Sequence record: NC_041911.1
Reading direction: 5' to 3' (one strand)
DNA length: 64,000 bases
Made by a program: the position numbers and the translations under genes. How positions within the stretch are numbered: position 1 is the first letter of the stretch; every line of letters starts with the position of its first letter. Shown piece after piece: positions 11,118 through 29,576 of this stretch. Under the pieces are notes generated by a model. The model did no database searches. It worked only from the letters and a program-made list of their open reading frames with translations, and was not told where the DNA came from.

Positions 11118-11750
11118 ATGGCATTGATCCCACCGGTTGGTACATCCGGCATTTATAAGCTCGATGCTCCGTTCGCGGCGCAGTTGCAGCCCAACATGTC
11201 GTATCGTTGCGACGCCATTCGTCGTCTCTCGGACTTATTGGAACTGGGGATCGATCCCTTCGCTGAGTTCTACGACAAGAATGGGCTGACGAAAGAGAAG
11301 TACGACGCAGACGTGGTAAACCAAGTTTGCATGATTTCTCTGGTGTCGTCAAGCGGTCACTGGTTGTATGTACCGTCGACCTACGTACTGGCCTACCCCG
11401 ATCTCAACGGAGTGCCGTACACGGTGATGGTGCTGGGCTTGGAATTGGGTGCTATTCCCAATTACAAGGACCTGACTGGTCTGAAACAAGCTCTGGCCAA
11501 TCTGACGCGCGATACGATTGGCGTGATGCCGACTGTAAAGGAGGTGGCCGTTTCGGCTGTCTCGAAGCTTTCTCAGGCTGATGCGGATGCCTTGGAAGCT
11601 GCGCGGCAGCAGTTGATCACCAACTCCCAAACGGACCGTGCTAAGTTACTGGCAGTGCAGCAAGCATATGCTTCCCTGCAACAACAGTATGCAGCGCTCG
11701 AAGCATACGTCCAGCAACACGCACTGACCCAAGCACCAACCTCGCCATAA
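11118..11750 (+). CDS. Conserved hypothetical or virion protein with C-terminal coiled coil
   Basis: GGAGG RBS, co-transcribed with the preceding gene. Confidence 0.6.
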   Translation: MALIPPVGTSGIYKLDAPFAAQLQPNMSYRCDAIRRLSDLLELGIDPFAEFYDKNGLTKEKYDADVVNQVCMISLVSSSGHWLYVPSTYVLAYPDLNGVPYTVMVLGLELGAIPNYKDLTGLKQALANLTRDTIGVMPTVKEVAVSAVSKLSQADADALEAARQQLITNSQTDRAKLLAVQQAYASLQQQYAALEAYVQQHALTQAPTSP

Positions 11751-17416: not shown

Positions 17417-19021
17417 ATGGCTACCGCTTACCAGTATCCGTTCGATCCCAGCGGCACTTCGTCTGCCAACCGGATCTTGAACGAGCAGCATGTCATCACC
17501 GCTGCAAACTTTCGGGATTACCACTACGTAATCCCGAACTTTGCCCCTTTCTTTGAGGGCGACTTCGACATCAAAATGCAGTTTCCTGATGGCTCGATTC
17601 GTCCTCTGACGCAAGGCGTCGACTTCTACTTCTCGAACCAGTTCTTGGACGCTTCGCGTGCCTGTGCGAAGCCTGTCTATGGTTCGATCTCGTTCCTTGA
17701 CACCGATACCGCCGGTATCCTGTCGATCAACTACAACACTGTTGGTGGCGAGTGGAACATCTCGCCGACAGAAATCTCGCGTATCTTGGCCGAAGAGCTG
17801 CGCAACCCCCGTATTACGACCTGGGAACAAATCACGTATTTACCGGAACGTTTCCCGGTAGTCGATCACGCGTGGGATCTGATCGACATGGTGGGTATGT
17901 CTCCGGTTGTGGCTGCCATCGAAGCACTGCGCGACGCGGTTGTGACGAAGAACGGTGGTAACTTCACCGATCACATCAACAACTACTCGAACCCGCACAA
18001 CACCACGGCGGCGCAAGTAGGGTTGGGCAATCTGTTCAACTATCCGATTGCTACGACGGCTGATGCCCAGGCTGGCACGAGTAACTCGTTCTACATGACA
18101 CCCGCGCGTGTCAAGGACGAAATCATGGCATTCGCTACGCCGCTGTCGCACTTGACGGATTACACCAATCCGCACCAAGTGACAAAGACCCAGGTGGGGC
18201 TGAGCAATGTGGCGAACTTCGCAGTTTCGACCACGGCAGAAGCTCAAGCAGGTGCTGTTGATACGTCTTACATGACGCCGCTGAAGACAGCACAAGCCAT
18301 CACGCAGCAGGCCGGTTCAGCGCTCGCAGCTCATGTTGCGAACCAGCAGAACCCGCACAACGTGACGAAAGATCAGGTTGGCTTGTTCAACGTCCAGAAC
18401 TATCCGATCGCTACGCAACAGCAAGCGATGGCTGGTACGGACAACGCCTCGTACATGACGCCGCTGCGCACAGCACAGCTGGTAGCTCAGATCTCTTCAG
18501 TGGCGCTACAGAACCACTTGAATGACTTTACCAACCCTCACCAAGTGACGGCCGGTCAGGTGGGTCTTGGTAATGTGCAGAACTACGGTATCGCTACTCA
18601 GGCTGATGCACAAGCCGGCGTGAGCAATACGCTGTACATGACGCCGGGTCGTGTCGCTGATGCCATCAATGCACTGGCTACGCCGCATGCTCACTTGCTG
18701 GATATGAACAATCCGCACCAAGTGACCGCGGCTCAAGTCGGCGCATACACGACTACTCAGACGGATACGCTGTTGGGTGGTTACGTGCGGCTGACCGATC
18801 AGTGGGTAGCGGGTGAAACCAAAGCTGCCTTCATTGCAGAAGTGCTGCAGGGTACGGCGAACAATGCTTCGATGGTTTACGGTTTCACGGAAGCCCAACT
18901 GGCCGCCGATCTCGAAACCAATTACTTCGATAACGCTTACGCCACCATTGCTGCATTCAATGCATTGGCCCAGCGCGTGACCGACATCGAAACGGCCCTC
19001 AACAGCATCACCGTTGTGTAA
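17417..19021 (+). CDS. Tail fibre / baseplate-attached fibre protein with about 4.5 NPHxVTxxQVGL repeats
   Basis: N-terminal YQYPFDPSG..NRI..E.H domain as in phiKZ-like fibres; tandem ~60-aa repeats NPH.VT..QVGL.NV.NY.IAT...AQAG...YMTP. Confidence 0.8.
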   Translation: MATAYQYPFDPSGTSSANRILNEQHVITAANFRDYHYVIPNFAPFFEGDFDIKMQFPDGSIRPLTQGVDFYFSNQFLDASRACAKPVYGSISFLDTDTAGILSINYNTVGGEWNISPTEISRILAEELRNPRITTWEQITYLPERFPVVDHAWDLIDMVGMSPVVAAIEALRDAVVTKNGGNFTDHINNYSNPHNTTAAQVGLGNLFNYPIATTADAQAGTSNSFYMTPARVKDEIMAFATPLSHLTDYTNPHQVTKTQVGLSNVANFAVSTTAEAQAGAVDTSYMTPLKTAQAITQQAGSALAAHVANQQNPHNVTKDQVGLFNVQNYPIATQQQAMAGTDNASYMTPLRTAQLVAQISSVALQNHLNDFTNPHQVTAGQVGLGNVQNYGIATQADAQAGVSNTLYMTPGRVADAINALATPHAHLLDMNNPHQVTAAQVGAYTTTQTDTLLGGYVRLTDQWVAGETKAAFIAEVLQGTANNASMVYGFTEAQLAADLETNYFDNAYATIAAFNALAQRVTDIETALNSITVV

Positions 19022-19073
19022 CCAACCCATTTAAGGGCGAGGCGGGAGACCGCCTCGTTTGAGCGAACAAGTC

Positions 19074-20351
19074 ATGACTATTCCGATCTATCGCTATCCC
19101 TTGGATGGCACCGGCACCAGCCCGGATAACCTGGTGGTTGGAGAAGAACACCAGCTCTCCAACCGAGCAATTCGTTGCGTAGCGCCGACCTACGGTGGCT
19201 TCTACGCTGAATCCGCAGTGGTGACGGACTTCAACACTGGCGTACCGCTGGTGCGCGGTGTTGACTACTACTTTGGTGAGCTGTTCGAGTTCCCCACTGG
19301 TCGTTACGGTAAGGAAATCTTCGGCCTGATCGTTATCACCAAGCCGAACGTTGCTGCCGTTTCGATCAATTACCAAGCACTGGGTGGTGATTACTCCTAT
19401 TCCATGGACGCAATCATCGCCATGATCGACAACCTGAATCTGGACACGCGTCCGGTGGAATGGGGTGCGATCATTGGTCGTCCGGCGCTGTTCGATCCGG
19501 CAACGCACTGGCACGATGCTGGTGACATCTACGGCTTCGAATACGTAGTGAGCGCGCTGATCGATCTGCGCAACGCCATCCTGACGGGTGACGTGGCCAG
19601 CCACGATGAGATCTATCGCTACATCGATCGCTGGGCAGCTCAGCAGAGCGCGGCCATCCAAGCAGTTTCCGATGCACTGCACACGCACATCGTCGACTAC
19701 ACCAATCCGCACCAAACCACGAAGGCACAGGTAGGGTTGGGACTGGTGTCGAACTTTGCGACAGCGCTGCAAGCTGACATGAATACTGGTACGGCGAACA
19801 ACCTGTTCGTGACGCCAGATATCGTTGCCGCGTACGTGACTCAGCAGGCAGTGAATCCGCTGCTTGCTCACATTGCCGACAAGGGTAACCCGCACCAGAC
19901 TACCGCAGCACAAGTGGGACTGGGTAATGTCCAGAACTATGGTGTTGCTTCCCAGCCGGACATGAATGCCGGTACGCGTGACGACGTCTATCTGACGCCG
20001 CTGAAGGTCGCGACCTATGTGACAAACGTCGCGGTTAACCCGATGAATGCGCACATTGCCAATACCAACAATCCGCATGCCGTGACACAGGCACAAGTTG
20101 GGTTGGGTAGTGTTGCGAACTATCCGGTCGCTACTCAGGCTGAAGCGCAAGCTGGAACGGCTAACAACCGCTACATGACTCCCTGGCTCGTAAACCAAGA
20201 AGTCATGCAGATGCTCAACAACGGTGCATTCGACGGTCGCTATATGCGGTATGGCACCGCCACTGATGGTTCGACCTGGGTTAGCGCTGGTATCGCCTAC
20301 GTGTTCGTATCGGGAGCATGGCGACAGTTCTGGCCGCCTGTGTGGCAGTAA
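19074..20351 (+). CDS. Tail fibre protein, paralogous to the preceding gene, with 3 NPH-QVGL repeats
   Basis: YRYPLDGTG..NLV..EEH N-terminus; three repeats; C-terminal YVFVSGAWRQFWP. Confidence 0.8.
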   Translation: MTIPIYRYPLDGTGTSPDNLVVGEEHQLSNRAIRCVAPTYGGFYAESAVVTDFNTGVPLVRGVDYYFGELFEFPTGRYGKEIFGLIVITKPNVAAVSINYQALGGDYSYSMDAIIAMIDNLNLDTRPVEWGAIIGRPALFDPATHWHDAGDIYGFEYVVSALIDLRNAILTGDVASHDEIYRYIDRWAAQQSAAIQAVSDALHTHIVDYTNPHQTTKAQVGLGLVSNFATALQADMNTGTANNLFVTPDIVAAYVTQQAVNPLLAHIADKGNPHQTTAAQVGLGNVQNYGVASQPDMNAGTRDDVYLTPLKVATYVTNVAVNPMNAHIANTNNPHAVTQAQVGLGSVANYPVATQAEAQAGTANNRYMTPWLVNQEVMQMLNNGAFDGRYMRYGTATDGSTWVSAGIAYVFVSGAWRQFWPPVWQ

Positions 20352-20359
20352 GAGATGTG

Positions 20360-20392
20360 AAAACCACTCCGCCCAAAAGGTGGAGTGGTTTT
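20360..20392 (+). terminator. Terminator after the fibre genes
   Basis: AAAACCACTCCGCC/GGTGGAGTGGTTTT stem followed by TATG. Confidence 0.75.
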
Positions 20393-20426
20393 TATGTCTG
20401 GTGTTATTTGCTAAAAGGAATTTATC

Positions 20427-20804
20427 GTGGCCACCACCTCCTCTACAACCACTGATGTGCAAGGGTATGACATCAATACTCTCCGCAACACAATTAACAG
20501 TGTGCGGGCTCGTATTGCTGCTGGTCAACCCATCAGTGCCAACCAAATCGCTGACCTTGCTTGGGTGTACAACACTTGGATTCAGCATACCCACAACTAC
20601 TACGACTATTACTGGATCGCTTACGGTAATACGTCTCCCTATGGCACCACTGCTGTATGGAAAACTTCTGGCAACGTTGGTGTAGGGTATTTCTCACCAC
20701 CTGGGGCTGGACAAACTGTTCAAGCTGCTCATGTGAATGGCTTAGCGGGTCTGGTCAATGCGATCCGATCCCATACCCACTATTCGCCGGACGGCAGTTA
20801 CTAA
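20427..20804 (+). CDS. Small protein with two GQ-x19-HTH modules (fibre-tip-like)
   Basis: AAAGGA RBS, GTG start; GQ...HTH at aa 33-56 and 95-118. Confidence 0.7.
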   Translation: MATTSSTTTDVQGYDINTLRNTINSVRARIAAGQPISANQIADLAWVYNTWIQHTHNYYDYYWIAYGNTSPYGTTAVWKTSGNVGVGYFSPPGAGQTVQAAHVNGLAGLVNAIRSHTHYSPDGSY

Positions 20805-20887
20805 ACATTCCGTTAGGTAAAAAAGCAAGTGCGTTTTTACCTATCATTCGATTTTTATAGTAATCCATTTCGAGGACGAATCCACCA

Positions 20888-21085
20888 ATGTCCAATTATC
20901 TCTCCACTGTAACAACGGCTGCGGCGCCAGCTAACACTGTGGGGCAAGGCCAAGCGGTACAACCAGCCACGATGAACCAAATGGCTGCTGTACTGGATTC
21001 ATTGCTGAGCCACACGCACGTCTTTTATGACAACTACGGCAGCAACTGCAATTGTAACTGCGCCTGCACCCGAGGATCTCTGTAA
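20888..21085 (+). CDS. 65-aa protein with a GQ-x19-HTH module and NCNCNCAC tail; candidate radical SAM substrate or precursor
   Basis: GAGG RBS; stop overlaps the next start (TAATG); Cys at 54, 56, 58, 60. Confidence 0.75.
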   Translation: MSNYLSTVTTAAAPANTVGQGQAVQPATMNQMAAVLDSLLSHTHVFYDNYGSNCNCNCACTRGSL

Positions 21086-21972
21086 TGAAAACTGTCTTTA
21101 TCAAAAGCGGCGGCTACTACGAAACGCCAGGTGTCGCTGTCTCCGGCGCTATCAACGACGCCTTCGACTTCAACGTGAGTCAGCATTGCCGTTCGAATGC
21201 GCTGTTCATGCTCGACTATGTCAGTCGCGAATACCGCCTCAGCCTTACCGTTGCCTCTGGTGACATGAAAGATGCGTTCGCGCGTCTCGACATGGATCTG
21301 ATCACCAAGGCCGCGGAAGAGCATGGCTTCTCTTATGTCGGCCTGGTGGCTGACGAAAAGGCGATGATGGCTCGCCCGGATGAATTCCTGCGCGACTTGT
21401 CCGTCGTGACCGTCTGCAAGGAAACCGGCAAGTTCCTCGATGCCAAGTCCGGCACCGCTCTGACCGGCAACAACATCACACCGGTGATCTACTGCGTGAA
21501 GATGGCTGACAGCACGTACGCCATGATCCTGAGCCAGATGGCCAACGTGATGCCGAGCATGGTCGACAATCCGAAGGTGGGTCGTGACGACATGAACGTC
21601 ATCGTGGTCAATGACGGCGATGCCATGCGTAGTCAGTTCGTGGACGTCAGCTTCCACGGCGCTACCAAGCATTTCCGCAACAACGACCTCGTTACTGGTT
21701 TCGCAGTGTTTGCTTGGCCGAATGCTCTGATTGAAGTTAATATCTTCAAGGACACGCCGCTCGCCGCTGAGTTCAAGAAGAACTTCGAACTGGAAGTCGA
21801 CAGCAGCTTTGATGCCAAGATCGTCGACGGCAAGGTCGTTATCCAGATGCCGCCTTCGTGTCGCACTGGCTATCTGTCGATCAAGCTGAAGACCACACCG
21901 CTGTACGAAGACGTCTCGTCGCGCGAGATCAAGGAAATGCTTTCGTTCGACTTCATCGTGACGGTTGTTTAA
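21085..21972 (+). CDS. Unknown protein translationally coupled to the Cys-rich peptide
   Basis: 295 aa, strong C-ending codon bias, TAATG overlap. Confidence 0.8.
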   Translation: MKTVFIKSGGYYETPGVAVSGAINDAFDFNVSQHCRSNALFMLDYVSREYRLSLTVASGDMKDAFARLDMDLITKAAEEHGFSYVGLVADEKAMMARPDEFLRDLSVVTVCKETGKFLDAKSGTALTGNNITPVIYCVKMADSTYAMILSQMANVMPSMVDNPKVGRDDMNVIVVNDGDAMRSQFVDVSFHGATKHFRNNDLVTGFAVFAWPNALIEVNIFKDTPLAAEFKKNFELEVDSSFDAKIVDGKVVIQMPPSCRTGYLSIKLKTTPLYEDVSSREIKEMLSFDFIVTVV

Positions 21973-21988
21973 CCACTCCTATTCGAAG

Positions 21989-22015
21989 CCGACAGATGAC
22001 TTGTTCATCTGTCGG
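21989..22015 (+). terminator. Terminator-like hairpin before the radical SAM genes
   Basis: 11-bp stem CCGACAGATGA/TCATCTGTCGG followed by TTTTATGC. Confidence 0.7.
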
Positions 22016-22041
22016 TTTTATGCTCCCATCAGGACACCATC

Positions 22042-23655
22042 ATGCAAGAACAAGTTATCAAAATCCATCGCAAGAAAGAACCCATCGACTTCAAGAAACC
22101 CGGGGAGCGTATCAAAACCATCGCCGAGGTCAAGGACATTCTGTTCGCTGAACTGAAAGTCCTGAACGTGATCCTGACCAACGCCTGCAATCTCTCGTGT
22201 AGCTACTGCTTCGAACAGCACAAACAGGACTACGGCAAGTTCACCCAAGAACAACTGAAGCAAGTGTATGACTTCCTGCTGAACGCCAACACTCAGCCGC
22301 ATCGCCACTTCCAGTTCTTTGGTGGTGAGCCGTTGGCGCAGAAGAAGAAGATCCTCGACTTCTGTCGCGACCACAAGGACGAACTCTCGGCCAACAAGGA
22401 GCAGGTGCGTGTGTCGATCGTGACCAACGCGCTGCTCCTGACACCGGAATTCATCGAGGAATACTGCAGCTACGATTTTACGTCGCTGGTCATTTCTTTG
22501 GACACGGATGATGCCGAGTCGAACCGTCGCGAACTGACGCAAGAGAACATCGACTACATCTTCGAGATGATCAAGCTGTTGCCTGACTCGATGATGCGCG
22601 ATGCTCACCACGTCTCGATTCGTTGCACCATCAACGAAGAGAGCGTACCGCACCTCGATCGCTTCATGGAGCGTCTGTATGCGTCCGGCGTGCGCAATTT
22701 CGTGATCCATCCGCTGATCCTCGCTAAGGATCAAGGCGCCATTGAATGGCAGCCGGGTATGTGGGAGCGGATGTACCATTCACTGCATCAAGCCATGCAT
22801 CGCTGGGACGACTTCAAGATCACCTGGGCCGAAGGCGTGGGTGTGAAAGGCGAGTCCAACTGCATGGTCGGTTCGGACATGATTGCGATGGACGCCTCGG
22901 GTGACTTCAGCGGTTGCTACTTCCTGACCAACCTGAAAGAAACCTACGGCAACACGATGCTCGGCAATCTGTTCCGCGACGAGATCTACATCGATCGTTA
23001 CGTCGAGTTCCAGCAAGCCTATGCCAAGTCGCTGGAACACGAACAGTGCCAGTCGTGCCACCTCAAGAACTTCTGCTACCAGTGCCCGGCTGGTAATGCA
23101 GCTACTGGTGGTTCGCTGTTCCGTCCGGACTCGATGTGCAAGCGCATTGTGGAACTGTTCCTCACTCTGCGTCAGGACTTCAACCGTAAGGCTTTGCTCC
23201 AACAGTTCAAGGAGCTGGAAGAAGCTGTTGTCCAGCAAGGTCCGATTGCTCAGTCTCGTGCAGTGCTGCATTGCATCTACCGCGAGTTCACTGGTGAGAT
23301 TCAGGACAACGCCATCATTGACGCTTATGAAGAACTGCCGGCACCGCACACGCTGCTCTTCATGTTCAAGCAAATGCTGGAAGGCGGTTTGACTAGCATT
23401 CCGCCGCTCGACGTGTGGGTGTCTGGACTACTGCGCCGCAACCCTCGTCCGGAGGAAAGCATCGATCCGTACGAGTTCTACCTGTTCTTGTGCAAGCTAC
23501 GTGGTATCCCGATCGATTTCAAATACACTCCGAATGGTTCTGTTCAAGAGCAGAACTACTTTATCACCCTGACTCACTTGCTGATTTTCGATGAAAGTCG
23601 TTATCTCAGCAAATACGATCCGGAACACAGCCGGTCTCGTATTCTCGACCTGTAA
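22042..23655 (+). CDS. Radical SAM/SPASM enzyme 1 with ~170-aa C-terminal extension
   Basis: CNLSCSYC, FFGGEP, IVTNA; SPASM: NCMVG..GDFSGCYF..LGNL..CQSC.....CYQCP..C. Confidence 0.93.
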   Translation: MQEQVIKIHRKKEPIDFKKPGERIKTIAEVKDILFAELKVLNVILTNACNLSCSYCFEQHKQDYGKFTQEQLKQVYDFLLNANTQPHRHFQFFGGEPLAQKKKILDFCRDHKDELSANKEQVRVSIVTNALLLTPEFIEEYCSYDFTSLVISLDTDDAESNRRELTQENIDYIFEMIKLLPDSMMRDAHHVSIRCTINEESVPHLDRFMERLYASGVRNFVIHPLILAKDQGAIEWQPGMWERMYHSLHQAMHRWDDFKITWAEGVGVKGESNCMVGSDMIAMDASGDFSGCYFLTNLKETYGNTMLGNLFRDEIYIDRYVEFQQAYAKSLEHEQCQSCHLKNFCYQCPAGNAATGGSLFRPDSMCKRIVELFLTLRQDFNRKALLQQFKELEEAVVQQGPIAQSRAVLHCIYREFTGEIQDNAIIDAYEELPAPHTLLFMFKQMLEGGLTSIPPLDVWVSGLLRRNPRPEESIDPYEFYLFLCKLRGIPIDFKYTPNGSVQEQNYFITLTHLLIFDESRYLSKYDPEHSRSRILDL

Positions 23656-23668
23656 GGTAACTTAACCC

Positions 23669-24751
23669 ATGAACTACGATAACATCCAGGACGTCTCGAT
23701 CTATGTGGGTCCTGCGTGCAACTTCAACTGCACGTATTGTGATCGCGCCTACGTAAACAACGTAGGTGTGGATTCTGCTGAATGCGATCCGGCCTTGGTC
23801 GACTTCGTAGTTGATGTGGTGCTGCACTCCGAGCGTCCGATGGTTTCCTTCCACGGTGGGGAACCATTTGTTTACATCAAGACCATGGAGAAGATCATCG
23901 AGGCCGTGCTCGAACGCGTACCAGATTTCAAGGAACGCGGCGCGATCTTCTTCATCCAGACCAATGGCTCGCTGATTACCCGTCAGCGAGCTTTCTTCGA
24001 GAAATACAAAGAGGTGCTCTACGTGAGCATCTCTTACGACTTCAAGTACCAGGGCGATAACCGCACTGCGTACGACATTGACTCAACCCTGCAACTCTTG
24101 AATGATCTGGGGATTGGGACGAACCTGCAATACGTGATTCCGACCTACGACAAGAACGCTTGCGATCACGCAGCGTACTCGGAAGTCATGCGGTTGTTCT
24201 CCAAGTTTAAGCTGGGGCAACTGAACCTGATCCTGTTGCGTCACATTCGGCAGGAAGATAAATTCGAAACAGTGATCGCGGATGAGAGCATCGACCTAAA
24301 GGGATTCTTCCTCGGCTTCATGCGCTTCGTCCAGTTGCTGTACGTCTCAGGTATCAATGTCCACATCGACGGTCATGCCAACAAGATCGATAAGAACTAT
24401 TACAACAACCATAAGCAAATGGTGCTCGCTCCAAATGGCCTGATCGTACCGGAGTACCAGTTCATCGAGTATGATGATTACGATTTCGCTATCGGTCGCT
24501 GGAAGCCTTACGTGGAGATCTCTCGTGATCAGATGCCGGAGAAGGCCGCCAAGAAGATTCGCAAAGAGTGCCAGACTTGTCCGATGGCGGACATCTGTGG
24601 TTTGCGTTATCACTACGCAATGTTCGATATGGACCCGCCAACTCCGCAACGGTGCAAGGAGTTCTACTCTCTGAACCTGATCGCGATCAAGCACCTGTAC
24701 AAACTGAAAGAGCAACCCACCCTTCTCCACCATCTGGGAGTTCAGCAATGA
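23669..24751 (+). CDS. Radical SAM enzyme 2 with partial SPASM domain
   Basis: CNFNCTYC, FHGGEP, IQTNG, ISYD; C-terminal CQTCPMADIC..C. Confidence 0.92.
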   Translation: MNYDNIQDVSIYVGPACNFNCTYCDRAYVNNVGVDSAECDPALVDFVVDVVLHSERPMVSFHGGEPFVYIKTMEKIIEAVLERVPDFKERGAIFFIQTNGSLITRQRAFFEKYKEVLYVSISYDFKYQGDNRTAYDIDSTLQLLNDLGIGTNLQYVIPTYDKNACDHAAYSEVMRLFSKFKLGQLNLILLRHIRQEDKFETVIADESIDLKGFFLGFMRFVQLLYVSGINVHIDGHANKIDKNYYNNHKQMVLAPNGLIVPEYQFIEYDDYDFAIGRWKPYVEISRDQMPEKAAKKIRKECQTCPMADICGLRYHYAMFDMDPPTPQRCKEFYSLNLIAIKHLYKLKEQPTLLHHLGVQQ

Positions 24752-25896
24752 GTCGCGCTATCACGATCGAGAATCCGAAAGAGCACTTCATCCGTTACGA
24801 CGGACTGCTCAACGTCCAGTATGACGTGACGTTTTCGATCTTCAAGAAGTACACCTGTCAAGCCGGGTGCAAGATCTGTTATATCAAGGATGACTTCCTG
24901 CCTAACGAGCAGTTCAAGAAGTATGTCCCGATAGCATCACACGTCAACACGCAGAGCTACGGCGACCGCCTGCTAGAATTCCTGTCATACTTTCAGATGG
25001 CAGCAATCATCGACGACCTGTACTTTGTGCGGGAAGAACATCCGGAGCTGTACAAGTTCTATCAGGAGTATAGCGAGGCCTTCTGGCTGAGTTCCATGAC
25101 GGACAACGCAGTGTTCCGTCACCTGCCGATTATTGAGGATGACCTTCGTGTCGTCGGTCTACGGGAGATCTCGCTCTCCGAGGAATTCTTGTATAAAGTC
25201 AACCAAACGAAGTTCTTTAACGCACTGGATAAAATTCAGAGGCGCGCTAAGATATTGAAAATAAAGGTAATACTGTCGGGTCTCCCTGGCATCGCGATTC
25301 GTGGCAACGATTTGATGCTCTGGTGTCAGAACAATCAAGTGCTCCTAGAGAAGCAATACGAGCACGGTGTTGAGCCGAATGGCCGCAGCTTCCTGTCTCA
25401 GTTGCCGAACACGCGTTACAGCGATCGCAGCCAGGAAACGCACTTCACTGAAGAGATCACCTACAGTGAGAATTCTGGTGAGATGCTGTACCCAATTCAC
25501 TCTGAGTCGATCTTCTTGCAGTACGATGACTTCTACTCGGAGCTGAAGTCTGCCACGCGTGAAGACCGCAGTGCGCCGTTTGCCAAGCTGGATGATTTTG
25601 TCCAGAGTCCGCAAGGCTTCTTGGCTAAGGTGCTGGAAGGTAAGCTGACGGATTACCGCAAGTATGCTTCGTGGATGCAGAACAAAGATCACGACTACTT
25701 CCGTTACTTTGACTATGTGGCGAATAACGTGGTAGTCAATCATGACTTCAACTTCATCCCGCGTATCGCTCTGCGGCCAGATAGCGTGTACTATCACAAG
25801 CTGATGGAACACACGAAGCTGGTGGATACCCAATACGGGCTCGTGGATTCTGCCGCGAGCAAGGTCGTTCCAATTTACTCTTTCAGAGAACAATGA
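24748..25896 (+). CDS. Divergent radical SAM-like protein 3 (no GGEP, no SPASM)
   Basis: CQAGCKIC motif near the N-terminus; ATGA overlaps at both ends; start reassigned to MSRAIT. Confidence 0.7.
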   Translation: MSRAITIENPKEHFIRYDGLLNVQYDVTFSIFKKYTCQAGCKICYIKDDFLPNEQFKKYVPIASHVNTQSYGDRLLEFLSYFQMAAIIDDLYFVREEHPELYKFYQEYSEAFWLSSMTDNAVFRHLPIIEDDLRVVGLREISLSEEFLYKVNQTKFFNALDKIQRRAKILKIKVILSGLPGIAIRGNDLMLWCQNNQVLLEKQYEHGVEPNGRSFLSQLPNTRYSDRSQETHFTEEITYSENSGEMLYPIHSESIFLQYDDFYSELKSATREDRSAPFAKLDDFVQSPQGFLAKVLEGKLTDYRKYASWMQNKDHDYFRYFDYVANNVVVNHDFNFIPRIALRPDSVYYHKLMEHTKLVDTQYGLVDSAASKVVPIYSFREQ

Positions 25897-27152
25897 GCAT
25901 AAGCACATTCCGAATCGAGAAGTCGGGTGAAGTGTTTGGTTACGACAACACACTGAACTCGATCCTCGATGCAAACAACCAGCCTGTGGGTCGAGCTTCG
26001 TCTCTCCTGGCTCAGGCTCCGTCGTTCGAGAAATCGAATACTCCTACCACCATCAAGGTACTGCTCGGGCACGCCTGTAACTACAGCTGCAGCTACTGCG
26101 TACAGAAGGACATCGGTAATCCGGCTGAACGTCCGAAGAACATCATGACCAAGGAGTTGATCAAGAAGATGCGCGCGCATCTCGATCTCTCCAACGTCAC
26201 GCGGATTGAACTGTGGGGCGGCGAGACGCTGCTCTACTGGCCGGATATCGTTGAGATCATCTCAGCACTGGATCGGGAAGGCATTACGTGGTACATCCCG
26301 ACCAACGGTACGATCCTGCGGATGAAGCACGCTGAGTTCTTCCGCCAGATGAAAGGCGAGATGACCATCGGCATCAGTCACGACGGTCCGGGTCACGTAT
26401 CGCTGCGTGGTCCGGAGTTCCTGCATCGCAAGATCGATGAGTTGGGTGCGCTGCAAGACGCCAAGGTACGGTTCAGCTTCAACGCTGTGATCAGTACCAC
26501 GAACTACGATCTGTTTGCCATCGATGACTACTTCCGCTTCTTCCTGCTCAAGGCAGACCTCGATCACGTAGGGCTGGGCTTCGAGCTGGGGCGGACGTAT
26601 GAGACGGGTGCTTGCGCTACCGAGTCGCACGTGATCACACTGGAGCAGATCCCGCACTATCGGTCGATTCTGAAAGCGTATCTCAAGCACCATCTCGATG
26701 CGTTCAAGAAAGGTCAAGCGCCGGAAGACATCGATGCCGATACTCGACTGTTCAACAGCCTGTTCCATTTCAGCAATGGTGTGATTCCGTACGCGAAGTC
26801 GCTAGTTCAGCAAAGCCCCATTCGCTATTACAGCAACTGCGGCACTGATGATCCGAACCTGATCACGCTGGACATGAATGGCGCTATCCGCGTTTGTCAG
26901 AACACGGACGAGAGCTACATCTACGGCAACGTTGCTAATATCGGCGCTGCTAAGATGCAGAAGGTCGATTACAGCAAGAACGACTTCTGCAAGGACTGCT
27001 CGGTTTTGCGGCTGTGCAATCGTAGCTGCCCGATCGAACTGCCATACGAAACCTTTTTGACCAACCACCATATCGAGAACGCTCACTACAGCGAGATACA
27101 ACTCTCGGCGTTTGAGTTGTTGTTCGATAGCCCTATCACCAAAGTGAACTGA
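25893..27152 (+). CDS. Radical SAM/SPASM enzyme 4
   Basis: CNYSCSYC, LWGGET, PTNG, ISHDG; SPASM: NCGT..GAIRVCQ..YGNV..CKDC.....CNRSCP. Confidence 0.93.
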   Translation: MSISTFRIEKSGEVFGYDNTLNSILDANNQPVGRASSLLAQAPSFEKSNTPTTIKVLLGHACNYSCSYCVQKDIGNPAERPKNIMTKELIKKMRAHLDLSNVTRIELWGGETLLYWPDIVEIISALDREGITWYIPTNGTILRMKHAEFFRQMKGEMTIGISHDGPGHVSLRGPEFLHRKIDELGALQDAKVRFSFNAVISTTNYDLFAIDDYFRFFLLKADLDHVGLGFELGRTYETGACATESHVITLEQIPHYRSILKAYLKHHLDAFKKGQAPEDIDADTRLFNSLFHFSNGVIPYAKSLVQQSPIRYYSNCGTDDPNLITLDMNGAIRVCQNTDESYIYGNVANIGAAKMQKVDYSKNDFCKDCSVLRLCNRSCPIELPYETFLTNHHIENAHYSEIQLSAFELLFDSPITKVN

Positions 27153-27160
27153 GAAAACTC

Positions 27161-27997
27161 ATGTCCGACATTCTTGACCGTTTTGTCCTGCCCGAAACTG
27201 CAGCCCAAGTTACCGAGCTGCGCGCCCAGCTGGACGCGATGAAGAACCATCGTGTCTTCGGTATGGTGAAAACCATCGACGACCTGCAAACCTTCATGTC
27301 GCTCCACGTCTACGCCGTGTGGGACTTCATGACGCTGGCCAAGCGCCTGCAGTGCGAGTACACCGGCATCAAGTTCCCGTGGGTGCCGCCGCGCCTCCCC
27401 AAGGTCGCCCGTCTGATCAACGAGATCATCCTGGCCGAAGAGTCCGACGACAACGGTGAGGGCGGTACTTGCAGCCACTTCGAACTGTACGCCATGGCCA
27501 TGCAAGAAATCGGTGACATCGACATGGAGTCGCTCGAAGCATTCGTAACGAACCTTCGTTACGGTATCCCGCCGGTGGAATCTGCTAACCGTGCACTGAT
27601 CAAGGCCGATCCGGAGTTCCGTGCGACTGTCACCAACTACATCGGCGATACTACTGCCGTGGCTCGCACTGGCCTGCCGGAAGAAGTGCTGGCCTACTTC
27701 GTCTTTGGTCGTGAAGATTCGATCCCGGCGATGTTCAGCAACCTGCTTGAGCAGATGGGTGATCTGGCTGCCAAAGCGACGACCTTCACGTACTACTTGA
27801 AGCGCCATATCCAACTCGACGGTGAAGACCACAGTGTCAAAGCTGCTGAGATGCTGTCGCTCGAACTGGAAGGCAATCCGATTCGCACGCGCACCGCACT
27901 GATCGCTGGTATCAATGCCGCCAAGTCCCGCATTGCTTTGTGGGATGCGATTGCTGCGAAGCTGGAAGCAACTCAAGCAGCGACGGCAACTGCCTAA
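27161..27997 (+). CDS. DUF3050 / heme-oxygenase-like diiron (HDO superfamily) protein
   Basis: FMSLHVYAVWDFM.L.K.LQ, RLINEIILAEESD, SHFELY..AM, FGREDSIP.MF, YYLKRHIQLDGEDH: DUF3050 signature with E/H diiron ligands. Confidence 0.85.
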   Translation: MSDILDRFVLPETAAQVTELRAQLDAMKNHRVFGMVKTIDDLQTFMSLHVYAVWDFMTLAKRLQCEYTGIKFPWVPPRLPKVARLINEIILAEESDDNGEGGTCSHFELYAMAMQEIGDIDMESLEAFVTNLRYGIPPVESANRALIKADPEFRATVTNYIGDTTAVARTGLPEEVLAYFVFGREDSIPAMFSNLLEQMGDLAAKATTFTYYLKRHIQLDGEDHSVKAAEMLSLELEGNPIRTRTALIAGINAAKSRIALWDAIAAKLEATQAATATA

Positions 27998-28859: not shown

Positions 28860-29474
28860 CTAGAACTTGTTGCAGAAAACAGTCGCGTACAGCTCATCGA
28901 GCTTGGCGCGCTGTTCCGGCGTGTAGACATCGTTGCCACCGAAGATGGTGTCGGCCAGAGTGATCGGCAGGGGAGGCCACTCGGTGATCGTTTCCGGTAC
29001 TTCCAGATCGATCTTGACCCAGTCCTTCGGATTGCCTTGGGCATCGATGAAGACATCCACTTCCCACTTCAGGTCAGTGCCTTCGATCGGGAAGGTGTAA
29101 CGGATCTTATCCATCGACTCGCCAGTGATCAGGCGGAAGACTTCGTGCAGATCCTTGGAGACGGGCACGGATACTTCATCGCACTCCCCGCGACCAGTGT
29201 AGGCCTTGCCAGTCAGGGTGTAACGTACCTGGCCCATGCCGTTAGTTTCACGGACACGGATCGTACCGCCCTTGCCTTTGAGCGAGGATTGCTTCTGGGT
29301 TTCTTGGGAGACCGCTTTCTGCAGCTCTTCCGGATTGGTCAGACGACCGTACCAGACGTACTCTTTTTCTTTGGCTTTCTCGCCGTTTTCGAGATCTTCC
29401 AGCGCAACGTTCAGCAGACCGAAAGACAGAGATGCCAGTCCGAGCGGGGACTGAGTCAGGATGTTGGTTTTCAT
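28860..29474 (-). CDS. CYTH-like (triphosphate tunnel metalloenzyme) protein
   Basis: EKEY (ExE), IRVR, YTLTGK, DEV, KIRY, WEVDVF, IDLEV pattern. Confidence 0.7.
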   Translation of the reverse strand: MKTNILTQSPLGLASLSFGLLNVALEDLENGEKAKEKEYVWYGRLTNPEELQKAVSQETQKQSSLKGKGGTIRVRETNGMGQVRYTLTGKAYTGRGECDEVSVPVSKDLHEVFRLITGESMDKIRYTFPIEGTDLKWEVDVFIDAQGNPKDWVKIDLEVPETITEWPPLPITLADTIFGGNDVYTPEQRAKLDELYATVFCNKF

Positions 29475-29576
29475 AGTGAGGAATAGGTGCATGGAGTAAG
29501 ACATAAAAATAGGCACCGGCATAAAAAGCCTACTAAGGCACCCGAAAGCACCCTAGTAGGCGTTCACGTCTACCCA

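Follow-up and report, generated by a model that had tools for sequence, protein, structure and literature searches.

A gene encoding a 125-residue protein (here TWO; 20427-20804) and an unannotated 65-codon gene (here PEP; 20888-21085) of Ralstonia jumbo phage RP12 share a homologous helix-His-x-His-x3-Asp module, and mark a widespread and apparently undescribed phage gene cassette. In every locus with enough flanking sequence the two genes occur together with three radical-SAM genes and an ORF078-like gene that possibly encodes a fourth, divergent radical-SAM-like protein, and a tail-fibre-like gene usually lies upstream. TWO is predicted to have a novel fold, and PEP carries a ladder of alternating cysteines. 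A sequence-only reading of the same DNA had noted a GQ-x19-HTH motif present twice in TWO and once in PEP, and that observation held. Its interpretation, that the motif is a fibre-type trimerisation and metal-binding module that displays a modified peptide on the virion with TWO as a possible unmodified assembly partner, was only partly supported: the shared module and the partnership were confirmed and a fibre link is plausible, but nothing supported a fibre-type trimerisation unit.

Results

The module shared by TWO and PEP

The window analysed was a 64,000-nucleotide stretch of the RP12 record (NC_041911/AP017924), in which window coordinate plus 62000 gives the record coordinate; positions 19000-25000 are 100% identical to RP12 and to phage RP31. 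All features described below lie on the plus strand. TWO starts with GTG and is annotated as ORF074, whereas PEP starts with ATG and is unannotated in both the RP12 and the RP31 records. GQ-x19-HTH was found at residues 33-56 and 95-118 of TWO and at residues 21-44 of PEP, with 19 residues between GQ and HTH in all three cases. The full modules span residues 33-60 (module 1, 20523-20606) and 95-122 (module 2, 20709-20792) of TWO, and residues 21-48 of PEP (20948-21031).

The similarity is far beyond chance. BLASTP of PEP against TWO gave E values of 6e-7 for module 2 and 2e-6 for module 1, and hhalign of a profile of six peptides against a profile of 83 TWO relatives aligned 39 columns, matching module 2 with a probability of 96% and E 4e-9. 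Module 1 against module 2 gave a probability of 98.6% and E 1e-15, while reversed-sequence controls reached 19% at most. We also asked whether the N-terminal helix of TWO (residues 16-29) could be a degenerate third copy, which would make TWO a single-chain pseudo-trimer. This was rejected, as hhalign was not significant (18-33%, the higher value coming from overlapping columns) and the Asn positions of this helix are not conserved.

We next examined which residues of the module are conserved. TWO has few close relatives by word-based search, but a full HMMER scan of 1.84 billion representative proteins (clusters at 50% identity) found 107 at E<=1e-3, most of them 120-140 residues long with two matched stretches; one of the 107, P0052, is a repetitive sequence that looks like a spurious hit. 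In an alignment of 83 short members, H54, H56, H116, H118 and D122 were invariant, and N49, D60 and G67 were at least 90% conserved. The Asp four residues after the second His was present in 79/83 (module 1, D60) and 83/83 (module 2, D122). In contrast, the G of GQ was present in 64/83 (module 1) and 53/83 (module 2), and the Q in only 10/83 in each module, so that the conserved core is helix-HxH-x3-D and not GQ. The distance from that G to the first His was free of indels in 79/83 and 70/83. The module is therefore G-x2-[IV]-x-A-x-D-h-N-x-[LI]-x3-h-N-x-h-x2-H-x-H-x-h-x-D (h, hydrophobic), in which the middle residue of HxH varies freely (T, Y, S, N, R and others). The peptides carry the same unit, with H42, H44 and D48 invariant.

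The peptide family

Homologues of PEP were recovered by word search and pattern scans from Logan, ENA, IMG/VR and JGI assemblies, and their last 45 residues fall into at least 34 distinct versions. The N-terminal 20-50 residues are variable and of low complexity. From the helix onward the sequence is strongly conserved: HxH is followed by a nearly invariant F/Y-Y-D-D-Y stretch and then by a strictly alternating ladder of 3-6 Cys separated by N, Q, E, D or A, ending in a conserved [TGS]-R-G-x-x tail. In RP12 the ladder has four Cys (C-x-C-x-C-x-C) and, with its T-R-G-S-L tail, occupies 21044-21082. Between RP12 and its metagenomic relatives synonymous sites are saturated while dN is only 0.3-0.5, and the unannotated ORF is therefore a gene under purifying selection.

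Predicted fold of TWO

AlphaFold2 was uninformative with a nine-sequence alignment (pLDDT 49.9), but with 83 sequences it gave a confident compact alpha/beta monomer (pLDDT 93.6, pTM 0.82), although such a monomer model can absorb coevolution that really comes from homo-oligomer contacts. The model has helices at residues 16-29, 38-51 and 100-112 and a hairpin at 57-63/75-80. Each HxH lies in an extended segment directly after the second or third helix, so the amphipathic helical pattern noted from the sequence is real, and both modules sit in one chain. Foldseek found no neighbour in the PDB (best TM 0.24, E>2), and in BFVD it found only the independent model of the same protein (TM 0.89). 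Three profiles of the two families searched against PDB sequences returned nothing at E<=10 except a His-tag artefact, and neither TWO nor PEP had a Pfam or NCBIfam hit. The resemblance to the HxH sites of trimeric fibre tips is therefore limited to the three-letter motif, with the reservation that these searches bear on the T4 gp37 tip, P2 gpV and phi92 gp138 only if their structures are present in the PDB copy used, which is assumed rather than established.

Organization and conservation of the cassette

In RP12 the cassette follows two genes for fibre-like virion proteins, ORF072 (17417-19021; PHROG 2163/13857 and many tail-fibre PHROGs) and ORF073 (19074-20351). A terminator-like hairpin with a 20-bp stem followed by a T-run (20354-20398) separates ORF073 from TWO, and a second hairpin followed by a T-run (20814-20843; RNA fold z-score -3.1, with 0 of 200 shuffles folding as well) separates TWO from PEP. 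A scan for sigma-70 promoters was at background level. The stop codon of PEP overlaps the start of ORF075 (TAATG), which suggested translational coupling. ORF075 (21085-21972), annotated as hypothetical, encodes a 295-residue protein of unknown function without a Pfam or PDB hit. It is followed by three genes for radical-SAM enzymes, ORF076 (22042-23655), ORF077 (23669-24751) and ORF079 (25893-27152), and by ORF078 (24748-25896; PHROG 36229), which is annotated as hypothetical. The ORF078 product has an N-terminal CX3CX2C motif that Pfam does not recognise but that is also present in its homologue from one other locus (L043). ORF080 (27161-27997) is annotated as hypothetical in the record and listed as MgoB-like in the RP12/RP31 genome paper; Pfam assigned it to DUF3050 (2.2e-68), a HamA heme-oxygenase-like protein.

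To test whether TWO and PEP are true partners, we translated all ORFs of the fetched loci and searched them with profiles of TWO and PEP and with the RP12 neighbours. All 40 IMG/VR loci found through PEP also hold TWO, as do 20 of 22 further loci; in the two exceptions PEP lies within about 120 bp of the contig end. Wherever the flank allows, the locus also has homologues of ORF076, ORF077, ORF078 and ORF079, whereas DUF3050 is frequent but not universal. An ORF of 300-340 residues always lies directly beside PEP, downstream or upstream. It matches ORF075 only in the RP12-like loci and is treated as ORF075-like by size and position in the other layouts. Three gene orders occur: TWO, PEP, ORF075-like and enzymes; TWO, one or two extra genes, ORF075-like, PEP and enzymes; and PEP, two radical-SAM genes, ORF078, TWO, a third radical-SAM gene and DUF3050. 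Since TWO sits inside the enzyme block in the last of these, it belongs to the enzyme/peptide unit and is not simply a fibre-module gene. Other versions of the cassette add genes for a rubrerythrin-like diiron protein, an aminotransferase and a B12-radical-SAM protein.

The cassette is almost confined to phage contigs and almost exclusive to large phages. A scan of 185,579 bacterial species genomes gave at least one hit, on a 25.6-kb MAG contig, and absence from bacteria is not fully proven. Searches (tblastn) with TWO, PEP and ORF075 against 50,697 GenBank phage records found only RP12 and RP31, and literature searches found no description of the cassette.

The enzymes

ORF076 matched Pfam Radical_SAM (1e-19, 71.8 bits) and, weakly, SPASM (0.0095; 16.6 bits against a cutoff of 21.5). 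Its best NCBIfam models were the PapB (125 bits against a cutoff of 340), nif11-type, QhpD (73.8 against 453) and SCIFF (69.9 against 425) maturases, and its closest solved structure was the thioether-forming CteB (PDB 5WGG, E 2.5e-18). The alignment begins only at CteB residue 96, and those to PapB-type models at ORF076 residue 38, indicating that ORF076 lacks an N-terminal leader-binding RRE; it has a C-terminal extension of about 175 residues. No RRE was recognised in ORF075 or ORF078. Matches of ORF076 and ORF077 to the cyclophane-type YhhB, XyeB and GrrM and the His-Xaa-Ser HxsB maturase models reached at best 43-61 bits against cutoffs of 310-450. No peptidase, exporter or immunity gene was recognised in the conserved core of the cassette.

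Association with tail fibres

In a 379-kb phage, in T4-like contigs and in several others, the gene upstream of TWO or of the cassette matches tail-fibre PHROGs, which held for 7 of 10 upstream proteins in one test and for three further loci (L020, L021 and L023). Ralstonia phage FLC4-3B is syntenic on both sides but lacks the whole cassette, and its second fibre (gp75) ends in a Peptidase_S74 intramolecular chaperone domain that ORF073 lacks. ORF073 ends instead in a short C-terminal segment shared only with cassette-bearing relatives, as seen in an alignment with five other loci (L002, L007, L010, L012 and L017) and FLC4-3B gp75. While TWO is modular, with Gly_rich_2 or other beta-rich inserts between the modules, C-terminal add-on domains (once with a Hint domain) and tandem paralogues, PEP stays nearly constant. 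We read this pattern as resembling a variable, receptor-binding-like component paired with a constant partner. The fibre synteny, seen in very different large phages, gives indirect support for a fibre or virion link, although it could partly reflect shared ancestry of large myophages.

The sequence-only reading had named virion proteomics as a check on its proposal. The only proteome, a band-excision LC-MS/MS survey of RP31 virions (PMC5468394, Table S3), listed 32 proteins, among which the TWO orthologue (RP31 ORF70) is absent. However, both neighbouring fibre-like proteins are also absent from this list and the unannotated peptide could not have been matched, so this is a weak negative from an insensitive survey.

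Discussion

Our analysis established the homology of the modules, their conservation, the predicted monomer fold of TWO, the strict co-occurrence of the cassette genes and the fibre synteny, whereas metal binding, thioether chemistry, docking between TWO and PEP and location in the virion are inferred. On present evidence we tentatively favour a model in which TWO and PEP are two products of one phage-specific cassette that share a module of about 28 residues which arose by duplication. In this view both copies fold within the single compact monomer of TWO, the loop between them or the C-terminus serves as a site where different phages carry extra domains, and the four invariant His and two Asp would most likely form a metal site. 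PEP would consist of a probably disordered N-terminus, one copy of the module, the nearly invariant F-Y-D-D-Y stretch and the Cys ladder, which the CteB/PapB-like enzyme and its companions probably cross-link or otherwise modify. This chemistry is inferred from homology and is only a guess, since the SPASM and family-specific radical-SAM models all score below their curated cutoffs. The module of PEP would probably be the handle by which the peptide docks onto TWO, the enzymes, or both, and from the conserved gene order we infer that the matured pair probably acts with the fibre encoded just upstream, as a tip or assembly component, although there is no direct evidence that either product is in the virion.

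The main alternative, which we consider less likely, is a conventional released RiPP. Here the module of PEP would be a leader read by the maturases, the modified Cys-rich core would be freed by host or unidentified proteases and released at lysis as a bioactive peptide, TWO would be a leader-like paralogue acting as a second substrate, chaperone or regulator, and the position beside fibre genes would be incidental. Consistent with this are the small Cys-rich peptide beside a CteB/PapB-like enzyme and further redox enzymes, the typical tailoring genes in other versions of the cassette, the existence of leaders derived from whole protein families (NHLP/Nif11 type) and the absence of TWO from the listed virion proteins. 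However, no protease, exporter or immunity gene was recognised in the conserved core, ORF076 lacks the RRE that normally reads leaders, the link to fibre genes is persistent, TWO varies like a binding protein and PEP is translationally coupled to ORF075. In addition, the region from HxH to the C-terminus is the most conserved part of the peptide and the N-terminus the least, which we read as the reverse of many leader/core pairs.

It is improbable, though not excluded, that the invariant His and Asp are modification sites rather than metal ligands, with one or more radical-SAM enzymes cross-linking residues within H-x-H-x3-D of both TWO and PEP by cyclophane-type or similar chemistry. Three to four radical-SAM proteins for one short Cys ladder, the weak maturase matches of ORF076 and ORF077 and the conservation of the motif in the Cys-free TWO would fit this reading, but the matches are far below cutoff, the motif lies in a well-packed predicted fold rather than a free peptide, and the variable middle residue and extended geometry fit metal ligation equally well. 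Least likely is the fibre-type trimer of the sequence-only reading, in which three helices form a coiled coil and three HxH pairs hold a metal on the three-fold axis: although the invariant HxH with its variable middle residue and extended conformation, the conserved Asn residues seven apart on each helix in register with the second His, the fibre neighbourhood and the inferred need of a lone amphipathic helix in PEP for partners are compatible with it, the searches found no similarity to solved structures, two modules in one predicted compact monomer are not compatible with a simple three-fold arrangement, no third module was detected in TWO, and the module profile hit only TWO and PEP, and no fibre protein, among all ORFs of the window and of 60 loci.

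Radical-SAM peptide maturation is known from bacterial natural products and a few enzyme cofactors, not from phage structural biology. Should the products be on the fibre, this would be a new way of building or hardening a host-recognition organelle; should they be released, it would be a new phage-encoded RiPP class with an unusual obligate partner that mimics the leader. RP12 and RP31, which carry the cassette, are both cultured phages. An unlikely but not excluded extension is that the cross-linked peptide and its partner form a physical, probably metal-bearing component of the fibre tip, with the insert site of TWO as a swappable receptor-binding position. This would be the first RiPP-type maturation pathway dedicated to building a virion adsorption structure.

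Relation to known systems

The SCIFF/CteA-CteB and PapA-PapB thioether (sacti-/ranthipeptide) systems likewise have a short peptide with a C-terminal Cys-rich stretch beside a radical-SAM/SPASM enzyme, and PEP lies 957 bp upstream of ORF076; the arrangement of a short Cys-rich peptide beside the maturase is conserved in all loci. The present cassette differs in its below-cutoff family matches, the lack of an RRE in ORF076, its three or four radical-SAM proteins, the strict alternation of the Cys residues, an obligate partner sharing the N-terminal module of the peptide, the absence of a recognised protease or exporter, and its phage-encoded, fibre-linked context. In quinohemoprotein amine dehydrogenase, the small Cys-containing gamma subunit (QhpC) is cross-linked by the radical-SAM enzyme QhpD and stays in a protein complex rather than being released, as we propose for PEP, but the QhpD match of ORF076 is far below cutoff, there are no dehydrogenase subunits and the context is phage tail fibres.

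The HxH metal sites of trimeric fibre tips and spikes (T4 gp37 tip, P2 gpV, phi92 gp138) share with the module an H-x-H in an extended segment, invariant in 83/83 for both modules and in all aligned peptides, and a fibre gene neighbourhood. They lie within an intertwined trimeric beta structure of the fibre or spike chain, however, whereas the module is helix-led and sits in small stand-alone proteins. The T2/S16-type gp38 adhesins and fibre assembly factors are encoded just after the distal fibre gene, and like them TWO is a small, modular and variable gene product, with glycine-rich inserts in some family members; there is no detectable homology, and gp38 needs no radical-SAM enzymes or partner peptide. 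With the protein-derived RiPP leaders of the NHLP and Nif11 types, PEP shares, without any match to those families, only the principle that its N-terminal part is homologous to a stand-alone protein family, and here the related protein is always encoded in the same cassette.

Peptide gene, flanking hairpins and ORF078

The gene for the 65-aa Cys-ladder peptide (window 20888-21085) is not annotated in either the RP12 or the RP31 GenBank/RefSeq records, and it was also left uncalled on several of the metagenomic contigs that carry the cassette (e.g. the loci L002 and L017). The adjacent gene for the two-module protein (TWO) was flanked on both sides by terminator-like hairpins (window 20354-20398 and 20814-20843), suggesting that TWO is expressed at a different level from the peptide and enzyme genes. 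Within the enzyme block, ORF078 (window 24748-25896; PHROG 36229, no Pfam hit) was found to contain a CX3CX2C motif near its N-terminus, and the same was true of its homologue in the locus L043. ORF078 may be a fourth, highly divergent radical-SAM-like protein. Two unknown proteins are encoded close to the cassette, RP12 ORF066 (window 11118-11750) and RP12 ORF082 (window about 28860-29504, minus strand). The RP31 orthologues of these two proteins (RP31 ORF62 and ORF78, respectively) were detected in the virion by LC-MS/MS and they are therefore structural or packaged proteins.

Variation of the cassette among related loci

The TWO gene varied in length and copy number among the loci. Long variants were present in L033 (5620-6978) and L059 (5994-6878), in which the second module was followed by an extra beta-rich domain of about 160 aa and, in L033, additionally by a C-terminal Hint (intein-like) domain. 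In L007 (8563-9936), two tandem TWO paralogues of 230 and 222 aa, each with a beta-rich insert of about 100 aa, preceded a single peptide gene. In one pair of near-identical contigs (L031 and L070) the TWO gene was split into two ORFs by one frameshift, whereas it was intact in the sister contigs (L032 and L071). The otherwise tight cassette was also found to be interrupted in L017 (8600-9661; also L019 and L042), where a GIY-YIG homing-endonuclease gene was located on the opposite strand between the peptide gene and the ORF075-like gene. Other versions of the cassette carried extra genes (L049 5293-6081, L016 1203-1994, L028 4780-6048, L043 3291-5342), namely a rubrerythrin-like diiron protein of about 262 aa, a class-III aminotransferase, and a B12-binding radical-SAM enzyme.

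The only hit in the bacterial species genomes was a 25.6-kb contig (L063; NCGL01000045.1) binned as a Bdellovibrio MAG. This contig carried the complete cassette and is possibly either a mis-binned phage contig or a prophage. The entire cassette was absent from the syntenic relative, Ralstonia phage FLC4-3B (L064 8428-12857, compared with window 17417-27997). The second fibre of FLC4-3B (gp75) carries a Peptidase_S74 intramolecular chaperone domain, which RP12 ORF073 lacks, and is followed by a 185-aa gene.
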